DNA of 64,000 nucleotides from Orbicella franksi. Its lineage: Eukaryota. Location of the stretch: NCBI GenBank assembly GCA_964199315.1, contig OZ116707.1:4836001-4900000 (forward strand), in the 5' to 3' direction. The position numbers and the translations under genes were made by a program. Of this stretch, positions 26,733 through 36,945 are shown in pieces. The notes under the pieces are model-generated. The model was given only the letters and a program-made list of their open reading frames with translations. It had not been told where the DNA came from and ran no database searches. Each line of letters starts with the position of its first letter. The first letter of the stretch is position 1.

Positions 26733-28018
26733 TTGCACTCGTTTTTGATCTATTACATCTCAATTTAGAACATATCAGACTTTGTGTTTAATTTTTGGAC
26801 AATGGCACACCGTTTATGGGCATTTTTTATTGTTTGCAGCTTGAAAGGCGCTATTGTTTCTAGAACAAAGAACCGACTCTCAGCCAATTTCTGAGCGCGA
26901 GATTCAAAATCTTCGCTGACGACCAGATGCTGACAATATCACCCTTCTCGTGGTGGGGTAGGGGAAATGTCGCTCAGTACAGCGACATTTTTCCGGGGTA
27001 CGGAAGGGAAAATTTGTTACATGAAGCGCGGGCTGTAGAAGTTATTTCTTTCTTGTTGCAAACCGGCGAACGCCAACGTTCAGAAACGCACGCTTAAATT
27101 GCCAGGGTGTGTATTTTAAAATACAAATGAAAAAGCGAAAAATAAACTGCAAGTAAAACCCAGTCATCGGCAAAGAAAAGTGAAGCGAAGAAATAAGCCT
27201 TTTTTTCTGGTCTGTTTAATGCTCTGCAATAGGCCAGCCGCTAGTAAGCCAAACACGCTGCGTGGAAAGTAGCCTACTTGCAGCGACGAACTGCCGTAGT
27301 TTCCGCCACTATCAATTATGTTCGAAATATCAGTAAACTCTTGGGAGGGTTAAATTGTCATGATAAAATTATTGAATGTCTTTAAGTATAAGAAAACAAA
27401 AGCGCCTTTCGTGTTATTTAAAAACACAATTGCGCTATTAGTGCTGTTACTCCCCCAATTCAAACTAATCGATTTTTACTCTTTCCAAACATATTAAAGT
27501 TTATAATTAGTCAATCTAAGAAATGGTGACAGGATTCTTGGGGAATTTAGTTACCAAACACTTTCATTGCATTAGTTCCACTAAAGTATTCATAACTTGA
27601 ACGCTTTCGTGGCTAGTTGTGTATTGTTTTATCGTCTTTGTCTCTTAATCGTCAACAAACCATTAATTGACAAAAACTTTACTTTCCATGTAGAAGCGCG
27701 TGCCGCTAACCATTATCAGGTCTTGTGCACAACATGAATAAAGTTCTAATGAAGACCTCTATTCAGCTTGTTCTCCGAATTGGTTATTTAAAAAAGTTAC
27801 CGGCGTATAACATGTTTTGAGTGCAGCTGAGCGTCTTTGAAATTCGCGCTTAGTTGACACCATTGTTTTCTTGTTGTCATGAATGGTCATTGAGTTCTAG
27901 TTATTCTAATGAGGTAAATGGTTATAGAGACGCGTGCTTGACAACAATCATTTCGCTATTGTCACTTGACAACAACCATTTTGCTCGTGTTTAGATCGTC
28001 GAAAAAGTTTTCTAGGCA

Positions 28019-31000
28019 ATGTTTTCCAAGTTTAAGATAGAGAAGGCGCCAAACGTCCTCTACAAACGCGGACCGAGGCATTTTGAGGTAGAGCAGTCTG
28101 CTATCTCTTTGCCACTCCTTGAGGCGTACGACCAGCATATTCGCCAACTGCAGGCTGACGTTCAGCAGCTACGAGCCGAAAATAATGGCCAGGCGGTGGA
28201 ATTGGCAGGGAGAAGAGCGGAGAATTTCCAGCTTCGCCAGGAACTTCAGCTTCTAAGACAGGAAGTTGACCAAAGTCGCCTTGCAGTTGACCCTGTAAAG
28301 AACACAGTAAAATTTAACGTCAGCCGCAAAAGCTTTTGGGACGTGGACAGGGCTGCGCGGTCTTTGAAGAGAAAAAAAATCGGAGCCTTCCTCCGAAATG
28401 CTGTAGAGATTTTACCAGCAGAATTTAAACCAATCGAGGTACGTATCATTTCGAAAATTTATTGGTAATTACTCAGTGTTACATTCACCTGTCGCTGTTT
28501 ATTCCTTTCACGCTATAACCAAAGATTCTTAGTGAGCGCGTCTGAAATAAAACTTTTTATGCAGGCGATACCACGTGAAGACAAAACAGCTTGGTTACTA
28601 TTTTTTGCCAGAGTTTACTGCAATTATTTACCTCTGATTTAAAACTCAAATATATTTTCTTTGCTTTTAATTCGCTTTGCGGCAAATTGTTCTTATGAAG
28701 AAGCTACGTAGCCATATGATGAGATATGATGCCATCGCTGTACAAGCTGAAAGGGTGACGTATGTAGTGTGCCCACGGTATATCGATAACTTTCAGCGGG
28801 CTTTGAGCTGAAACCGCTGAAAAAAAGATGGCTGACAACATGGCGGCTAATTACACGCAGTTGCTGTTTCGTTGCTGTTGTTTACACGTTTATATTCCTA
28901 ACATTTAATCCTCATTGCCGCATCTGTTTCCTTCTTGCCGACCTCAGAGTCATTTATTTTGCGATTTTTTGTTGATTAACGTAGTTTACCTGATTTTACT
29001 CGTGCAGACGAACGTAAGCGTAGTTATTAAGATGCTCTGTTTATTTTTTCACACAGGTTAAATTTTATGTTAGCGGCCGTGAACTTGTAATCCCACTATC
29101 TGACAACCAACATGACGGCGATGATGACGAGGGCTACGCTCACGAAGTCGTACAAAGGATCTTGGCGGCGAAGGATGAAGGACTTGTAAGTGACAAAGCC
29201 TTCCACGAACTCAGGATGGCGCTCCCTGAAAAAGTTAGAAGTCACGTCCCGCCACTGTCCGCAGTCAAACAGGAAAGGAAGTCCCAAAACAAGGAGATCC
29301 AAGTAATTCAAATCCCGGAGGTAAATTAATTATTAGAGAACACGACCATTCATATCCCATTTATATTTGGCATTTGCTGATGAGCAACCTTATCATCAAA
29401 AGTCTTTAATAATCATCTTTGATAATCATAATTATTATGACCATCCATGGCTCTTGTTGGCCTTTCTATGTTTGTTTTTAGTGTTTTTACCGTTTTAAGC
29501 TGTCAATTTGATATTTCTGTTTATTTAATGACAATTTGGTCAGTGCTGAAATTGCCTTAAATTGTGTGATCTGGTTCCTTGAACTAATATATTAGAGTAA
29601 GTTTATTTTGATTTGTAGTGTTCAATACGTGTGCGACTGTGGCAAGCATAATAATTTGCAATTTATTTTTTTTTGGTCATAAATAATTGCAGGCCAAACA
29701 AGCTGATGGTGCCCGGAGGAGTATTCGTGATGTTTTGCAGTATTTAGTCGCAATACCGGAAGTTAAGGATGCCATCAAAAAAGATGGTTCCAAAATTAAA
29801 CTCCGATTCGCAGCTGATGGGAGGAGGACAAGCAAAAGGATTGGCACAGTTATGGCTGTGTTCAACATTCTGTGTGAAAATAAAGCTACTTACGAATACC
29901 AGTATACTCTGGCACTCTACAATGGTAAGTGCAGAGATTTTAATATCTTAACATTTTAATTCCTGTCGCATAGATGCCAAGCTTCAATACCAGGTTTCTC
30001 TTTAAGGGGTGGTAAATGGTCTCTGAAACAAATATGTCTCACGAGAGTTTAGTCAAATCTTAGTCTCCCATAGAAAAACACCTTGTCTTGCTCTCTAGTT
30101 AAGTCTGCATTTACCATTTGCAAACCCTTTGCCTTCATATGCAAAGCCTTCAAACACATTTAACCAAGAGTCATTATATTAATTAAAAAAAAACAGTTCC
30201 CAATCTTTCTTGTTAATTTTGCTTTGGTGCTCAAAATATGTCACAGTCAGTGAATCATGCCTATTACCATTCCATAGGTAAAGAAGACTATGAAGAATTG
30301 AAAGCTTGCCTTGGGCAGACCTTCCAAGAAATCGATGATTTGAAAGCAGAAGGAATATCAATTGATGGCGAACACTTTGATGTTGAGTGGTGAGTGTTGT
30401 CTTTTCTCTAAGATTAACTGATCACTCCTTTCTCTTTAAAAGCCTCAGATGAATAAGTCCTAAATCATGTTTTCATATTGGCTTGACAATGCCGATTGCT
30501 GACTTAAACACAGACATTTAAAATCAGCTTCATGCATTCTAAACATAAACAAAACACCTCAGATACTAACAAATAATGACCTTAAAGGTGTTTACTGGTT
30601 AATTTACGTTTAATAATTTGTTTATTAACAGGTATTGTTGTTCCGACTGGAAGTTTCTGGCTCTTGTTTATGGACTAAATGGAGCTAGCTCCAAATACTT
30701 TTGTATTTGGTGTTATTGCTGCAAGGATCAAATCAACAACCTTGATAGTAAGTAGGGAGAATTTCTTTTTGACATTTTGTATTTTAATTTCATATGCATC
30801 ATCACAGAGCCAACAACAAGCAAGGCGATAATAGAAATATAGAAGTACTAGTAGACTGACTAAATATTCTCTAACAACATACAAAAAATGCACATCTACA
30901 TTCAGACAGTCTATATCAGAATCTAATTATATTATGTGAATCTTTTTCCAGTTGATGAGTGGCCAATTGAGAGAAAGCTGTCAGAGTGCACTGGGTTGTG

Positions 31001-33360
31001 CCAGCGCTCCACCACTGCTGCAAGGAAAGGATGCAAAATGCCTCCTCTTCTTAACATCCCTTTTGAGTTTGTTGTGGTGGACACATTACATTTATTTTTA
31101 AGAATAATGGGACTGCTATTCCATCAGGTGAGCCTACAAGTATCATATAGTATATAGAGAAATGCCATTTTCTTATGCGCATTTTGAATTTTGGAGTTAC
31201 GGCGGTGCGTGACATGAAGCCAAGATCGCTTTAGCCATTTTAGGAGTTAAAGTATTAGGAAAAGTGTTTTTGTAAATATTTTTTGGTTCGGTTCTGATAA
31301 TCAGTCGTCCGAGAGCCAAAGTAAGTTCCAGATGTTAACACTATTTTCCGGCCGCCATATTGGAGGAGTAAGGAGGTCCTCCAACATGGCGGCTCCATAC
31401 TAGGCTCTATAATTTTGCGCAGAACATTTCGACGAATAGCTCAACTTTGGGACAGCGCACACCCCTTAAACTTGGTGAACTGCCTTCTTTATTTATCGTC
31501 TATAATATTACAATTTCTTGACTTTATCCACTGAATGGTTTTCGATTTTATTTTTTATTACACGACAATGCACACACTCCATTACCTCTACATAAAACAT
31601 ATATCAAATGAATGAGAAAACAGACACTTATTAATTTTGTGTTGTTTATTGTCTCAATATAGGTTGTTGAGGTTGTTATCAACAACGATTGCCCAGACAT
31701 TCTTACAGAAGAAATGGAGAGAATTCAAGTGGAATTCAAATTTTTTGAAGAATATAACCAACTCGCAGAAAAAGTAGAAACAAAGTGGACAAGTCTAAAT
31801 GGTAATAAGTTAACAATATATCTACATGATGTAATGTATATGAAATGATATATCTACATTTGTTAATAACATAGTTGGCATGGCTACACAATCAAATTCA
31901 GTATGCATTTATAACCTATGATTTCCTGAGCAAGTCTTATGCGCTCCAAACTTATCACTAGCCACAAGACTAAGAAGTTAAAAATTTAAACCCTGTTTTT
32001 TATTCATAATTCTAAATATTTATATTTTCTTTGAACATCAGGAAAAGAATTGCAAAACGTTTTGGAGAAACTGAACATTAAAAATGTTATGGAAGCTGTG
32101 GGTACCGAAGATGCAGAGGGCATAGATGATTTGTGGAATGTAAGTTGCTTGCAAGCACAAGCTCTATCCACCTTTTGCTATTGACTTCTTTGGAATTAAG
32201 CTGCAAATATCAGGCATCAGTTTTATTGAACAATTCCCCAACTATCCAAAAACACTTTGGAGAAAAGGCAGAAAATTTTTATTTTTCTGTCAAGTGGCAG
32301 CCCTTTTTTAGTACAGACAATTAATAATGATGTTTAATTGTTATCTGCATTTGCTTTTTGTTGTAGGGTTTTAAGACTTTGATGCGGGCACTGCAGGTTC
32401 AAGAAAATGATCCTGACTACCTTCAGCCTCAGAGCTTTAAGAAACATGTGCGGGAGTGGGGAAAGCTCTTTCTTGAAATTTACTATGATGACGACATCAC
32501 CCCCTACATTCACAGTACGTCAACAAAAATTATCCTCTTAACAAATGTCTTTCTGGATGGAAGTAATGATGATGAAATTAAATAATAATTTCACAATGCA
32601 TCTAGTTTTTATTATTAGCAGATAGATAGGCCTGAAAGTGATTGTACTTATATAAGTAGGTAGCTTCTAAGTGAAACTTTGTGGTATAAAAATAAATTTA
32701 GTATTTTTTTTTCAGCATTTGTATATCATGTACCACAGTTTCTGGAGATGCATGGTACTTTGATGCAGTTTAATTGCCAGCCTGTGGAAAAAAAGAACCA
32801 TTGGCAATCCCAGGCATTCCATCGTGGATCACAAAAAGGAGGAAAAAACTCAAAATACACAGTTCAGGTAGGCAAAGCATTTAACGTTATCTACCTGTAA
32901 CAAAATTCTTGGTTTGTAAATATAAATTTCGACATTTTTTCCATAAAAGAGTCTCTTGATGTCCTCCTACTCTAAAAAAATTGCTATCTATTGATACTAT
33001 AAATGTTTGCGATAGGATTAATCGTTGTAGAATTCATCTTGTAATTTCAAAATACTTGCATGATTACTCCCTGAATTTTACTTGACTCAGTATTATAACC
33101 ATCACAAATTACAAGGGATAAATAACTTATAAGCTGCTACATTTTTAAATCAAAACAATAAGTGTTGTCTTTTCTTAAAGGTCATGGAACAAGAAAACAG
33201 GATGATGTTTGCCCGATGCCACAACCTCAAAAGAAAACGGAGAAGTTACGTGAAGTCGAACGTGCCTGCCAGTCCAGACAGCTCAGATGAAGAAGAAGCC
33301 CCTGACAGCCAGATAGGGAGCATGCATGTTTACAACCACCACGAAGAACAAGAGGGCTGA
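28019..33360 (+). CDS. Intact 11-exon RAG1/Transib-clan DDE transposase, about 678 aa
   Basis: Exons 28019-28438, 29057-29320, 29693-29924, 30278-30389, 30632-30747, 30952-31127, 31663-31801, 32042-32139, 32367-32514, 32716-32867 and 33181-33360. All introns are GT-AG and phase-consistent, totalling 2037 bp with no internal stop. Motifs RFAADG, CCSDWKFLA, YFCIWC, VVDTLHLFLRI, WTSLNG, ITPYIHTFVYHVP and QPVEKKNH. An additional 5' exon is possible. Confidence 0.88.
31285..31572. repeat. Interspersed repeat inserted in intron 6 of the RAG1-like gene; ends approximate
   Basis: GC-rich hairpin GCCGCCATATTGGAGGA (31351-31367) / TCCTCCAACATGGCGGC (31377-31393) inside an otherwise AT-rich intron. Confidence 0.5.
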
Positions 33361-33552
33361 AGTTCACATTACAGAACTTGTCCAAAAAACAAAAACGGCT
33401 CCTTTAGGAGCCACCAAATTTGCAAAAGCAATGACCACACAAAGTTTATTTAATCCCTGTTATATTATTTTCTTAGTAATAAAAAATAAATAATATTTAC
33501 AAAGAAAAATTATAGTAATAACATATACTAATTACATTAAAATTAACTGTCA

Positions 33553-36217
33553 CTAAAAAAAATTTTTAACCACAAGTTTGATTTTTTTCCAGCACACAGG
33601 GCATCTTTTTCTTTCATTTTTTAATTTTGTTGCACATTCAAAGCAACAAACTTGATGCCCTGTGTCGCCATGAATAAAACTTGCATTCCGTGGTCTGGTT
33701 ACACAGACCACGCAAAGGTCGGTCAGGACACCTCCTCCCAGTTCCTCCTCGTCTTCTTCCTCCTCCTCCTCTTCCTCCTCCTCCTCATCGTCAGCGTCTT
33801 CGTCTTCTTCCTCCTCATTATCGTCATCATCCTCCTCATCTTCCTCATTCTCTTCATTTTCTTCCCACTGCTCCCACTCCTCCCACTCCTCTTCGCTCCA
33901 AACGGCCTCTCCCTCTTCCTCCTCATCCACCTCCTCTGCTCTCTCGTCATTTTCTCTGGGCAACACTTCTGAAAATGTAAAAATATGTTTGTCACCTATC
34001 AACAGTATAAAAATTTTGTTGGTTAATTGCCTTGATCCTGAACTTTGTTATTAAATATGATTTAGATACAATGACAAGTGGTTGCTAACTCACCATCTAA
34101 AAAGAAGAGGTCATCTTCGGAATCCGAGATGACCTCGGTAACAGCTGAATGGTAATTGCGGTCAGGGTCTTCAGAGTCAGGGTCTTCAGAGTCAGGGTCT
34201 TCCGAGTCAGGGTTTTCCTCTGTGGTGATGGGGCCACCAATGAACCCACAGCCCCATTTTAATTGTTCTAAATAAAATAATTGAAAAAAGTAGTATGTTA
34301 AATGGAATACTCAAATTTCTTCTTTTTTTAAACTGTTCAAACTCCACCTTGAAAAGTAATATTTACCATGTGAATCCCTTTTTCTCTTAACTCCTGTGAA
34401 TTTAGAAATAATTTGATAAATTATAAAATCTTATCAATTACCATGTCAAATTTTCAACATTATTATATGCCATTTACTTAGGGCATAGAGTAGTAGTTTA
34501 CCTTGACCCACTCCACCTAGTCCAGAGCTTCCTGGAACTGGAAATATCTCACTAATAAAATAAGATAAAAAGAAATGTCAGTGATGAGTTTGGACAATTC
34601 CAGAAACTAAATTGGAGAGGAATGGAAGGGCTTGACTTGACTTTTTTTTCTTTTTCTTCTGACAATGTGAGAATCATTTCACCAGGTCTGAGAGCAAGAA
34701 GCAGTCCATTTAATAAATTGTTGTCAGCGCGAGTGTAACACGAGTAGAGTATTTTGATATCCTGAATTTGGTCATATATATTTTTGGCATTAGATTTCCA
34801 TAGCATGCTAAACCGATGAGATTTATAGTGCAGCATTCTTATCCATCAGTGTGATATCTATTTGAGGTGTATTTTGTGGTCCGTCGCTCAACAGGCACTT
34901 CAAAATCTACACTAATACTTTCTGTTGTTGTGTGTAATCCGTCAAGTTGGAAACGGCAGCTATTTCATCGAGAATAAATTTAGCTCATTTCACTGAACCA
35001 CCGGCGGATTTATGAGCTTTTACTGTGAGCTTTGATGTGCTGTTTGACTAAGAAATACTTTCGCGTTTGCAAACGGAGATAGGTCGCAGGCAGAAGTACT
35101 TAATACGGATGCATTAACTTCTCACTTACCAAGCCTCGTGCCCTGCTTCCTCCATGATTGATGAATAGACCACGCTTTTGACAGTGCCAACTGGCATCGG
35201 TGTCAAATTACCAGGCTAGTTCAAAAGGGCGACTGGGTTAAAGGTCACTGAATAAAGCCCATTTTAGTATGATTATTTCAGTGATACCAACCCCGGGGAT
35301 GCACGCGACTAGCGCGATCTAAAAAGTGAGACGTATGGAGCTTTCCGTTCAAATCGAGGTGGATTGAATGCTGAGCTTTTTTTTAAGGCAAATAATTTAA
35401 TGAATACAAAAAAGGACCAGAAAAGAGAAATAGAAAAGTATCACACACTCGAGTTGGTCAATGCTTTCTTATATTTGGTGGCTCCTAAAGGAGCCGTTTG
35501 TTTAAGTGACTACCCAGCGGTAGGTCACTGTTGTTCACTTGGCGACTGATCTTGGCTTCGCCCAGGTTAGTCTCGTGCGCTCCTTGGGCTTCCGCTCGGC
35601 TTGCTTGTTCCGCTCACGGTAGAATGAGACCTTTAAAAGAGTTGAACCGAACACTACTTTCCGTACCACGTCTTTGCAAGCGACGGGGGCTCCATTCCCG
35701 CCTTGACAGCGCAAACACCCCGAATGATCAAAAAACACTTTTTTACGCTCTAAGAGAGCAATCTCGACAGGCTTGCCGGGCTGCAACCGACAAGTCGTAG
35801 AGGTTTTAAAAGTGTTTAGTGACCATCCGGCAGGCATTATGGCGCAAGCTCGTGAATGGGCACAGAAAACTTCATCGCTCGCAAGAGATTTGGCACGGAA
35901 GGAAGTCCACCGAACAACTCTTTAAAGGTCTCGGCATCCATCGGCATGGTAACGGACGCACGTCTCACGATGCTGGTTGTTGGTGGTTTCTTCATGTTCA
36001 GCTTCTCTGCAACTAACACAGCCAAGGTCTGCAGCAAGCCTGGAGTTCCTTGGTGGCATGTCCTAAAGACTTGTTTTAGGCGCTCGTTTGTATCGGCTTC
36101 ATCCACCCAGCTATCGTTCTTCTTTCCATAGCCACGCCAGCGAACAAGATACTGAACACGACCGTGAGCGTCCGTGCGCTTATCGAGCACTTTCGACACT
36201 TCATAAAACTTACTCAT
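33553..36217 (-). pseudogene. Chromodomain + unknown domain + acidic tract + MDM2-type RING gene, lightly damaged
   Basis: Exon 1 36217-35618 (MSKFYEVSKVLDKR...QYLVRWRGYGKKNDSWV, 1-bp frameshift near 35843). Exon 2 35247-35130 (in-frame TAG 35218-35216). One or two unresolved exons at 34959-34680. Phase-1 exons 34537-34502, 34393-34367, 34267-34094 and 33968-33553, the last with poly-E/D and CVVC...HGDTGHQVCCFEC...CPVC. Confidence 0.75.
34161..34219 (-). repeat. 15-bp coding tandem repeat x4 (DPDSE)
   Basis: TCAGGGTCTTCAGAG units on the + strand, read as ENPDSEDPDSEDPDSEDPD on the minus strand. Confidence 0.85.
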
Positions 36218-36530
36218 TTTCCTTAGCTCTTCTCTCAATCAGGGATTGTCTAAAGTGATTATGGCTTGCGTTTACGAGGCTATTTATGCAAGTATCATTG
36301 ATAAAATTTGAGCTTTTCAACTGCAGAACAATACCCCAAATTAGTGAATGGCCCGCCTTCGTTTATATTTGAGCGGCGTCGCGTGGGCAGAAACAAATCG
36401 GCGACAAACATGAGCGCGTGCGAGGTAGGGAGTCGTCACGAAAAAAGGAATAAGGAATAAAAAAACAACGGTTTGCCCAAGCAATTCCAAACAAGTCACA
36501 CTATTTTTTTTTCGCTCACCTAATGCGACA

Positions 36531-36945
36531 ATAAAGATTTTTGTTTGAGAATTTTTGGCTAACCGGAGAATAAAATTACTGAAACGGAAAAAGGTGCGAA
36601 AATCGCACCTTTTGTCTTGTCTTCAACAACGATATTTACTTGCTTCAATAGGCCAAAAAACAAAAATCGAGCGTTGTGTCTTCACTGTATTCTTTTCTCT
36701 TCTGAGTTTTGAGTTTCTGAGTTTTCTGAGACCAAAAAAGAAAAATCGAGCGGTGATGATAAAGATTTTTGTTTCAGAATTTTTGGCCAACCGGAGAAAA
36801 AAATCACTGAAACGGAAAAAGGTGCGAAATCGCACGTTTTGTTTTGCCTTCAACAACGATGTTTACTTGCTTCAATAGACCAGAAAACAAAAATCAAGCG
36901 GTGTGTCTTCACTGTATTGTTTTTTTCTTTTCTGAGTTTTTTTTA
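36531..36945 (+). repeat. 228-bp diverged tandem duplication
   Basis: ATAAAGATTTTTGTTT...ACTGAAACGGAAAAAGGTGCGAAA...TCTTCACTGTATT starts at 36531 and again at 36759. Confidence 0.9.

Follow-up and report, generated by a model that had tools for sequence, protein, structure and literature searches.

The 64-kb stretch of Orbicella franksi DNA analysed here (GCA_964199315.1, contig OZ116707.1, positions 4,836,001 to 4,900,000 of the forward strand; hereafter the window, to which all coordinates refer) raises the question of which genes can travel with a transposase that resembles RAG1, which cuts antibody genes. An earlier note had described a two-gene unit, in which an intact transposase of the RAG1 clan lies tail-to-tail with a single chromodomain-acidic-RING gene. 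The convergent, linked arrangement was found, but the genes number three, namely a RAG1-like transposase gene (plus strand), a convergent gene for an acidic MDM2-type RING protein (minus strand) and an intronless chromodomain gene (minus strand), and all three are multi-copy. With a probability of roughly 0.72, the segment at about 27864–37529 is a single copy of a composite, multi-copy cut-and-paste DNA transposon of stony corals that carries these three genes and whose transposase is of the RAG1/Transib fold class. A RAG1-like coral element is here paired with genes for a histone-mark reader and an MDM2-type RING protein in place of RAG2. The earlier observation is thus partly confirmed, and its interpretation is partly supported.

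Transposase gene

The RAG1-like DDE transposase gene at 28019–33360 (plus strand), recognised by gene model, RNA-seq, profile and fold match, has 11 exons (28019–28438, 29057–29320, 29693–29924, 30278–30389, 30632–30747, 30952–31127, 31663–31801, 32042–32139, 32367–32514, 32716–32867 and 33181–33360). As had been claimed, the reading frame is uninterrupted; all introns are GT-AG, and translation without an internal stop gives 678 aa. Seven of the ten splice junctions (4/5, 5/6, 6/7, 7/8, 8/9, 9/10 and 10/11) were seen in polyA RNA-seq, junction 9/10 in just 4 reads. The transposase gene of the window copy is intact and transcribed. In the upstream region (27864–28018, plus strand), similarity to the Pocillopora copy L003 begins at about 27864, and a 26-nt direct repeat is located at 27937–27962 and 27965–27990.

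A 48-sequence profile of the transposase family, for which 4123 clusters were found (E≤1e-3), matched zebrafish RAG1 (E 2.9e-14), mouse RAG1 (3e-11) and BbRAG1L (5e-8) among PDB sequences. HzTransib chains were absent among the best 60 PDB matches listed (E up to ~1), RAG1 being matched at 1e-14. The alignment with RAG1 consists of two stretches, which cover D708–CxxC and HxxxxH–E962. Structural comparison made use of the AF2 model (pLDDT 92.8) of a relative, P0008, which is 40% identical to the window transposase and is not the window protein itself. In a Foldseek search of the PDB, this model matched RAG1 best (E 5e-16, TM 0.67–0.69), followed by BbRAGL (3.5e-10) and HzTransib (8.6e-10, TM 0.56). 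On the profile matches and this modelling, the transposase is assigned to the RAG1/Transib fold class, with a predicted RNase-H-like DDE core and an inserted ZnC2/ZnH2 module, in agreement with the earlier note.

The motifs AADG, SDWKF, FCIWC, YIHTFVYH and VEKKN of the window transposase fall in invariant or nearly invariant columns of the family, as do the positions aligned with RAG1 D708, C727/C730, H937/H942 and E962. The first invariant Asp, that of the AADG motif, is the putative counterpart of RAG1 D600, assigned by motif order alone and outside the stretches aligned with RAG1. With D600 matched in this way, the catalytic D, D and E and the four zinc ligands are all kept. The N-terminal ~270 residues are cysteine-free and are predicted to form a coiled coil.

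Minus-strand genes

The chromodomain, acidic tract and RING reported earlier are all present, but they are spread over two genes, and this copy of the chromodomain gene carries a frameshift. The RING gene at 33553–35155 (minus strand) encodes 230 aa in five exons (35155–35130, 34551–34502, 34393–34367, 34267–34094 and 33968–33553), in a model based on GT-AG sites and on exons that six other copies conserve. It starts from a conserved ATG exon of its own, with a splice donor, and, judged by the gene model, is intact in the window copy; none of its junctions was supported in polyA RNA-seq. The protein combines a short N-terminus, a KRKR motif and a long acidic tract with a C-terminal RING (Pfam zf-C3HC4_3, 2.8e-11) that carries an MDM2-like tail. 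The RING E3-type zinc finger proposed earlier is specifically of MDM2/MDM4 type: in a phmmer search of the PDB, MDM2 (E 1.3e-17) and MDM4 (6.8e-15) were matched in an alignment that reaches the last residue, and the next family followed at 6e-4. The C-terminal C2H2C4 RING and dimerisation tail that characterise MDM2/MDM4 are thus present. No Pfam match to a SWIB/p53-binding domain was found in the last coding exon, and just 33 residues precede the acidic region in the 230-aa model.

The intronless chromodomain gene lies at 35538–36217 (minus strand; Pfam Chromo 2e-10). ORFs of its family are of ~226–227 aa and combine a chromodomain at the N-terminus, where a Y/W/Y aromatic cage is found, and a conserved C-terminal domain of unknown fold. 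In the window ORF, 1 nt is deleted between 35846 and 35845, and the frameshifted ORF reads as 126 aa. In the polyA RNA-seq libraries, the chromodomain ORF had zero depth and no splice joints with the RING gene were detected. Upstream of the gene, subterminal tandem repeats of ~228 bp (36531–36940) are common to other copies. The partner genes showed no likeness to RAG2, and neither kelch repeats nor a PHD finger was matched in them, consistent with the earlier statement that the partner lacks kelch repeats and RAG2 homology.

3' ends of the genes

The stop codons of the transposase and RING genes are separated by exactly the 192 bp that had been noted (33361–33552). Poly(A) signals were again found on both strands of this gap, AATAAA at 33478 and 33485 (plus strand) and ATTAAATAAA at 33454–33445 (minus strand).

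The transposase and chromodomain genes each finish in a putative histone-type 3' UTR stem-loop with a downstream element. One, which the earlier note missed, is located 32 nt past the transposase stop (33392–33437, plus strand), and the other 37 nt past the stop of the intact chromodomain frame (35455–35500, minus strand). Both score 35.4 bits with Rfam RF00032, above its gathering score of 34. The transposase stem-loop (33392–33437) and 35455–35499 form a 45-nt inverted repeat, 89% complementary. Of the 38 other loci that carry the chromodomain gene, 24 have the stem-loop pattern 3' of it, among them copies whose chromodomain protein is only 50–54% identical to that of the window; a weak counterpart after the transposase stop was seen at locus L041 (24.5 bits). 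Depth of polyA RNA-seq drops about three-fold or more past 33434, and no end cluster was reported in these runs, all of them polyA-selected.

Copies and termini

The order chromodomain gene, RING gene, convergent transposase gene was found in ~12 other coral contigs. Locus L006 is collinear with the window from the chromodomain gene and its stem-loop through the acidic exon and the RING to the convergent transposase. Among 35 metagenome loci fetched using the chromodomain protein as query, the RING gene lies downstream of the chromodomain gene on the same strand at L008, L009, L010, L015, L016, L033/34, L035 and L039/40/41. L009, L022, L027, L033/34 and L041 carry transposase pieces in convergent orientation, each differing in its internal deletion. 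At least six different forms of internal deletion were distinguished; many copies have such deletions of microhomology type, and some are transcribed; the joint 32442|34140 was covered by 20 RNA-seq reads and is also present in the DNA of L009. Several coral holobionts contributed the metagenome contigs, so that orthology, and not separate insertion, may account for some of the loci.

The terminus of the element is located at 37480–37529 (minus strand), where the inward minus-strand read begins CGTATCAAGCTTTGCCTATTGT. At eleven loci similarity breaks exactly at window position 37529, with unrelated flanks beyond. The terminus starts with CGTATC, or with the variants CATATC and CACATC. In the Stylophora locus L004, the same 50-nt terminus stands ahead of a sense-oriented transposase fragment, as a terminal inverted repeat (TIR) would predict. 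The convergent co-occurrence at several loci with a shared end that the earlier note had proposed to look for is thus found, as are the multiple copies with a common end, unrelated flanks and internal-deletion derivatives that generally mark a cut-and-paste element.

A left terminus matching the right end was not found anywhere in the 64-kb window, and with blastn the two end regions of the window copy showed no inverted-repeat similarity to each other, nor did those of L006. No target-site duplication was readable at the window copy or at L043, nor were both TIRs together with such a duplication found on the window copy. Having no recognisable left end and a broken reader gene, the window copy has probably lost its autonomy, while the transposase and RING proteins that it encodes could still act in trans.

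Two distant relatives, both intronless, carry reader genes. L043 is a complete 4.68-kb element with 39-bp TIRs, which begin with CATATC as do terminus variants of the window family, and has a convergent PHD-finger gene; in L044 a chromodomain ORF lies directly upstream of the transposase. These genes strengthen the case for a histone reader as recurrent partner of the transposase.

Alternative explanations

The partner genes might be there by historical adjacency, an independent chromodomain cassette, with or without the RING gene, having landed beside the transposase; the composite would then have spread by segmental duplication or as a passenger, with the partners idle in transposition. This is improbable, and it draws on several observations. 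At five chromodomain loci with sufficient downstream sequence (L005, L007, L012, L018 and L025) the RING and transposase genes are absent, the chromodomain gene and stem-loop being found alone at four of these and on the 1395x-coverage 25.5-kb contig behind L007. Paralogous transposase loci of Porites, Exaiptasia and Pocillopora have no chromodomain or RING gene within ~10 kb, and the 45-nt inverted repeat brackets the RING segment as though this were an insertion that separated two older genes. However, gene order is maintained across copies whose chromodomain proteins are ~50–97% identical to that of the window. Furthermore, the common terminus sits beyond the chromodomain gene, which is therefore inside the mobile unit, and chance is a poor explanation for the PHD-finger or chromodomain gene that the distant intronless relatives independently have beside the same transposase. 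It is far less probable that the minus strand encodes a single multi-exon gene for one chromodomain-acidic-RING protein partnering the transposase, the reading of the earlier note. The chromodomain ORF and RING exons do share strand and order in ~12 loci, and alternative read-through or splicing may occur, but the intact ORF of the family is closed by a stop with the conserved stem-loop behind it, chromodomain copies exist without the RING gene, the latter has its own start exon, and no RNA-seq read joins the two genes, the chromodomain ORF itself being without reads.

A domesticated host locus would account for other features. In that case the transposase would belong to an exapted anthozoan gene family with the chromodomain and RING genes as ordinary neighbours, and the copies would be family members or pseudogenes, not insertions. 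Ten introns are unusual for an active DNA transposon, and together with the intact ORF, its transcription and the higher conservation of exons (91.0% identity) than of introns (84.5%) between the window transposase and the Pocillopora copy they favour a host gene, as do multi-exon homologues in Porites, Stylophora, Pocillopora, Oculina and Exaiptasia and the absence of a left inverted repeat from the window. Yet domestication is unlikely given the many copies with differing microhomology-type deletions, some of them transcribed, the one sharp terminus that 11 loci have in common although their flanks are unrelated, its inverted reuse beside a transposase fragment in L004, the resemblance of its start to the TIRs of the complete intronless relative L043, and the retention of all catalytic and zinc residues. 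A composite transposon of three genes is the preferred reading.

Proposed roles of the gene products

In such an element, the transposase would excise and insert the DNA via RAG1/Transib-type chemistry. A chromatin-targeting or regulatory role may be inferred for the partner genes. The chromodomain protein, supplied in trans, would be a methyl-histone-reading cofactor or regulator, analogous to the PHD finger of RAG2 for RAG1. The RING protein would be a ubiquitin ligase, or dimerise with one, and may modulate the stability of the transposase or the MDM2-p53 damage response of the host; the stem-loops would couple expression to S phase. As a tentative generalisation, RAG1-like transposases might recurrently, perhaps ancestrally, use a separate methyl-histone reader, the coral element having the DDE core, RING ligase and reader on three co-mobilised genes tied to S phase via borrowed histone-mRNA 3' processing. 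If so, the three modules of the vertebrate RAG recombinase (DDE core, RING ubiquitin ligase and histone-mark reader) would be spread over separate genes, and PHD-mediated chromatin gating by RAG2 would be one case of a general strategy of the clade, not a peculiarity of the vertebrate lineage.

Comparison with known systems

MDM2/MDM4 act as E3 ligase and regulator of p53. The coral C-terminal RING and tail match MDM2 far above other RING families, and an acidic region likewise precedes the RING. However, the coral protein lacks the SWIB/p53-binding domain and the RanBP2-type zinc finger, has just 230 aa, and is encoded by a multi-copy gene borne on a repeated element. As in histone mRNA 3' ends (RF00032), the coral stem-loops pair 6 bp around a loop of 4 nt, with an ACC flank and, downstream, a purine-rich block, and are placed 32–37 nt past the stop. 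Unlike these, they are located on transposase and chromodomain genes; the transposase mRNA turns up in polyA-selected libraries, and the histone-type signal is known here from sequence.

The Transib superfamily sensu Kapitonov and Koonin 2015 includes Transib, TransibSU, Chapaev and Chapaev3 as clades (PMC4411706). The coral transposase is in the same fold class as HzTransib, for which a structure has been solved, and cut-and-paste movement and terminal repeats would be shared, whereas a canonical Transib codes for the transposase only. In Chapaev, the transposase itself includes a Chapa zinc finger and in some cases a RING, whereas the coral N-terminus is cysteine-free and the RING is encoded separately.

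RAGL/ProtoRAG transposons carry convergent RAG1L and RAG2L genes and are known from amphioxus, echinoderms, molluscs, nemerteans and some cnidarians (PMC7204232). The coral element differs from them in that its partner has no kelch propeller and no RAG2 homology, its transposase starts with a coiled coil in place of the NZD/Chapa zinc finger or RING, and it includes a third gene, for the MDM2-type RING protein, and histone-type 3' ends on two genes. Its termini begin with CGTATC/CATATC, compared with the CAC heptamer of RAGL, and no 5-bp target-site duplication was read. Common to both are a DDE transposase of RAG1 fold whose catalytic and zinc residues agree, a partner gene arranged tail-to-tail, and a methyl-lysine reader module on the partner side, which in the relative L043 is a PHD finger.

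Transposase gene and transcripts

The transposase gene occupies 28019-33360 on the + strand. Its 11 exons, separated by canonical GT-AG introns, form an uninterrupted 678-aa ORF, in agreement with the uninterrupted 11-exon gene of the earlier note. Exactly 192 bp lie between its stop and that of the RING exon on the - strand, and poly(A) signals are present on both strands in this gap, again as described. Exon junctions were examined in polyA RNA-seq (two runs, same species label) over the window from 30450 on, i.e. from junction 4/5 to junction 10/11. Junctions 5/6, 6/7, 7/8, 8/9, 9/10 and 10/11 were confirmed, and junction 4/5 is confirmed by a loose end.

Both the transposase gene and deleted copies of it are transcribed. 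Two non-canonical joints, both with microhomology, are covered by more reads than the exon 9/10 junction of the full-length form (4 reads). One, from 32442 to 34140 with 4-nt microhomology, is represented by 20 RNA-seq reads, and an identical joint is present in the DNA of metagenome locus L009. The other, from 29706 to 32783 (37 reads), is an in-frame deletion form, the product of which would lack the catalytic core, with the N-terminal domain joined directly to the C-terminal tail, and could be repressor-like. Within intron 6, RNA-seq depth at 31246-31444 equals the exon level; loose ends are numerous at 31314-31316 and 31361-31363, and several base calls are mixed. The segment looks like a short repeat expressed from another place in the genome.

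Relationship of the transposase to RAG1

Direct searches for RAG1 gave weak results. In Pfam, exon pieces and full-length relatives matched RAG1 at sub-threshold level only (E 0.011, later 2.7e-4), and a PDB search with an 8-sequence profile gave no match. RAG1 was reached only by a 48-sequence profile, which matched zebrafish RAG1 (E 2.9e-14), mouse RAG1 (~3e-11) and amphioxus RAG1L (5e-8) in two stretches, the D708-CxxC region and the HxxxxH-E962 region. An exhaustive profile search indicated that the transposase family is very large (4123 clusters at E<=1e-3). The ESM Atlas feature search returned unnamed clusters from Mucoromycota and arthropods together with vertebrate RAG1.

An AlphaFold2 model from 7 sequences was unusable (pLDDT 54) and was dropped. 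The 48-sequence alignment gave a confident model (pLDDT 92.8, pTM 0.90) of P0008, a relative 40% identical to the window transposase. Foldseek comparison of the P0008 model with the PDB placed 43 RAG1 chains at the top (best 5e-16, TM 0.67-0.69), followed by BbRAGL (3.5e-10) and HzTransib (8.6e-10, TM 0.56), with the P element only at 7e-5; the alignment with the RAG1/Transib fold expected in the earlier note was thus obtained for this relative. All positions invariant in the family, namely two Asp, the Glu, CxxC and HxxxxH, are retained in the window protein. By profile match and by the modelled fold of P0008, the window transposase is RAG1-like.

Two genes on the minus strand

The - strand had been read as a single chromodomain-acidic-RING gene. 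This reading is replaced by two genes, as the chromodomain ORF has its own stop and stem-loop and the RING gene has its own ATG exon.

The chromodomain ORF starts with an ATG at 36217 (-) and has 110 database relatives (identity up to 94%), which define the family as an intronless ORF of ~226-227 aa. An A present between 35846 and 35845 in seven other DNA copies is missing from the window; hence the window copy is frameshifted and reads as 126 aa. The intact frame has its stop at 35538-35540. By inspection, the Y/W/Y cage of the chromodomain is intact. Read depth over this ORF was zero in polyA RNA-seq.

Further downstream on this strand, the RING gene is modelled with five exons encoding 230 aa. 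Its short first exon (ATG, GTAAGT donor) and small internal exons are kept in six other copies; RNA-seq depth in the region was 1-5x with no joints reported, and the model has no RNA-seq support. The last 75 residues match the RING of MDM2 (E 1.3e-17) and MDM4 (7e-15), aligned through the final residue, and the next RING family follows at 6e-4. A long acidic tract and a KRKR motif lie upstream of the RING.

Histone-type stem-loops

A histone 3' UTR stem-loop above the Rfam gathering threshold is located at 35500-35455 (-), 37 nt past the intact chromodomain stop. A second one is found at 33392-33437 (+), 32 nt past the transposase stop (35.4 bits, compared with the Rfam gathering score of 34). 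Together with their downstream elements, the two stem-loops make up a 45-nt inverted repeat, 89% complementary, that flanks the RING gene. RNA depth falls about three-fold or more directly past the transposase stem-loop; as the libraries were polyA-selected, this fall is no test of stem-loop use.

Recurrence of the three-gene unit

The transposase, chromodomain and RING genes are each multi-copy in coral-derived assemblies. An ENA coral contig, L006, shows collinearity with the window that starts ahead of the chromodomain gene and runs through this gene, its stem-loop, the acidic exon and the RING exon to the convergent transposase, which in L006 has lost exons 3-9. A metagenome scan with the chromodomain protein as query gave 35 loci, 12 of which carry pieces of the RING gene or of a convergent transposase downstream of the chromodomain gene. 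The RING gene follows on the same strand in L008, L009, L010, L015, L016, L033/L034, L035 and L039/L040/L041 (L033/L034, and likewise L039/L040/L041, may represent a single locus), and opposite-strand transposase pieces, each with a different internal deletion, occur in L009, L022, L027, L033/L034 and L041. Convergent co-occurrence of the genes at several loci, the check proposed in the earlier note, is supported; the gene order recurs in L006 and the metagenome loci, and 11 loci share one end next to unrelated flanks.

Partial arrangements were also found. Among all loci with at least ~1.5 kb downstream of the chromodomain gene, L005, L007, L012, L018 and L025 have neither RING nor transposase genes. 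No chromodomain or RING gene is present within 10 kb of the paralogous transposase loci of Porites (L001), Exaiptasia (L002) and Stylophora (L004). The close Pocillopora copy (L003; 81-91% DNA identity including introns) loses similarity at window position 33243 and has no chromodomain or RING gene.

In L033, two tRNA-like matches (45.6 and 31.9 bits) at 3238-3561 (-) fall in the stretch that separates the RING gene from the transposase remnant; an inserted SINE may be their source. L007 (ENA ERZ25067868, contig ctg70755_1395x_c, 25.5 kb), the name of which suggests a circular assembly at ~1395x coverage, includes a chromodomain gene at 5827-6429 and a histone stem-loop at 6546-6590; its other ORFs gave no Pfam matches. 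L007 may be a tandem repeat present in many copies, or else an extrachromosomal element. Elsewhere in the window, further long ORFs are densely packed and, by eye, look transposon-derived (19908-21668 (+), 12081-14320 (-), 22010-26327 (-), 43035-45544 (-) and 58864-59745 (-)). Examples include a pogo/Tigger-like 586-aa ORF, reverse-transcriptase-like ORFs, and a DUF3504-like ORF that resembles the sequence fused to the Pocillopora copy.

Ends of the element

Eleven loci stop matching the window exactly at position 37529, on the chromodomain side, and their flanks past this point are unrelated. Read inward, this right end is CGTATCAAGCTTTGCCTATTGT, and variants begin with CATATC or CACATC. The 50-nt terminus recurs in Stylophora L004 ahead of a transposase fragment in sense orientation, as would be expected if it were the opposite arm of a terminal inverted repeat (TIR). 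There, at L004:9942-10040 (Stylophora pistillata LSMT01000602.1), the terminus is joined straight to the middle of transposase exon 1, and the annotated protein P0005 begins within this deletion derivative.

Pattern searches of the 64-kb window gave the right end only, with no second copy of the terminus. No TIR features were found at ~27864, where similarity to the Pocillopora copy starts, and blastn of the two end regions against each other revealed no similarity. The window copy probably lacks the left end. A candidate left end shared by L006 and L027 was discarded, as the similarity runs on past this point and into a ~314-bp tandem repeat. A target-site duplication was not readable in the window copy, in L006 or in L043, a distant relative.

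Distant relatives

A complete element of 4.68 kb, bounded by 39-bp TIRs that likewise begin CATATC, occurs at L043:152-4832 in a JGI metagenome. Its intronless gene for an 829-aa RAG1-like transposase is tail-to-tail with a gene for a 325-aa PHD-finger protein, with 193 bp between the stops; the PHD finger reaches the Pfam threshold. In L044:1393-4457, only 12 nt separate the end of a 164-aa chromodomain ORF from the start of an 852-aa RAG1-like transposase that follows on the same strand; the pair may represent a single gene that is fused or carries a frameshift. Comparison of the coral chromodomain family with the L044 ORF by hhalign gave only a moderate match (probability 51%, E 1.6e-4) extending beyond the chromodomain, and the same comparison with the L043 PHD partner gave no similarity. 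Reader modules thus occur with the transposase clade in three layouts: a chromodomain gene in convergent orientation (window), a PHD-finger gene in convergent orientation (L043) and a chromodomain ORF upstream (L044).

Proposed mechanism and comparison with known systems

The PHD finger of RAG2 acts on RAG1 through reading of H3K4me3. By analogy, a methylated histone would be the target of the chromodomain protein, which would act in trans on the transposase. The RING protein would either ubiquitinate or form dimers with MDM2-type RINGs of the host, and its presence suggests that the element might alter ubiquitin signalling or the p53 response to damage. The stem-loops would confine the mRNA to S phase, a restriction established in histone mRNA metabolism, and cut-and-paste elements gain copies when they move during replication. 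To our knowledge, histone mRNAs alone undergo stem-loop-type 3' processing. If used, the signals would break this rule and would provide a simple mechanism for transposition timed to S phase. The window transposase and RING genes and the chromodomain copy of L009 offer natural intact material.

The literature searched describes no element of RAG1 or Transib type that is partnered by a chromodomain or MDM2-RING gene or that has 3' ends of the histone type, and it contains no earlier account of a transposon-borne MDM2-type RING. The coral protein shares the RING of MDM2; however, no p53-binding domain was found in the 230-aa model, unlike in MDM2. The first ~270 residues of the transposase are cysteine-free and have a coiled-coil look, so that neither the Chapa/NZD zinc finger nor the RING known from RAG1, RAG1L and Chapaev transposases is present (PMC4411706; bioRxiv 10.64898/2026.01.24.700457). 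Solitary RAG1L loci in cnidarians and a few RAG1L-RAG2L pairs in corals were reported by Martin et al. 2020 (PMC7204232).

None of the three readers is RAG2, and the arrangements are unrelated to one another. Why a RAG1-type transposase requires a chromatin-reading partner is a central puzzle of RAG origin. Because one clade is linked to three unrelated reader arrangements, it becomes directly testable whether histone-mark reading is a recurrent requirement of RAG1-like transposition.
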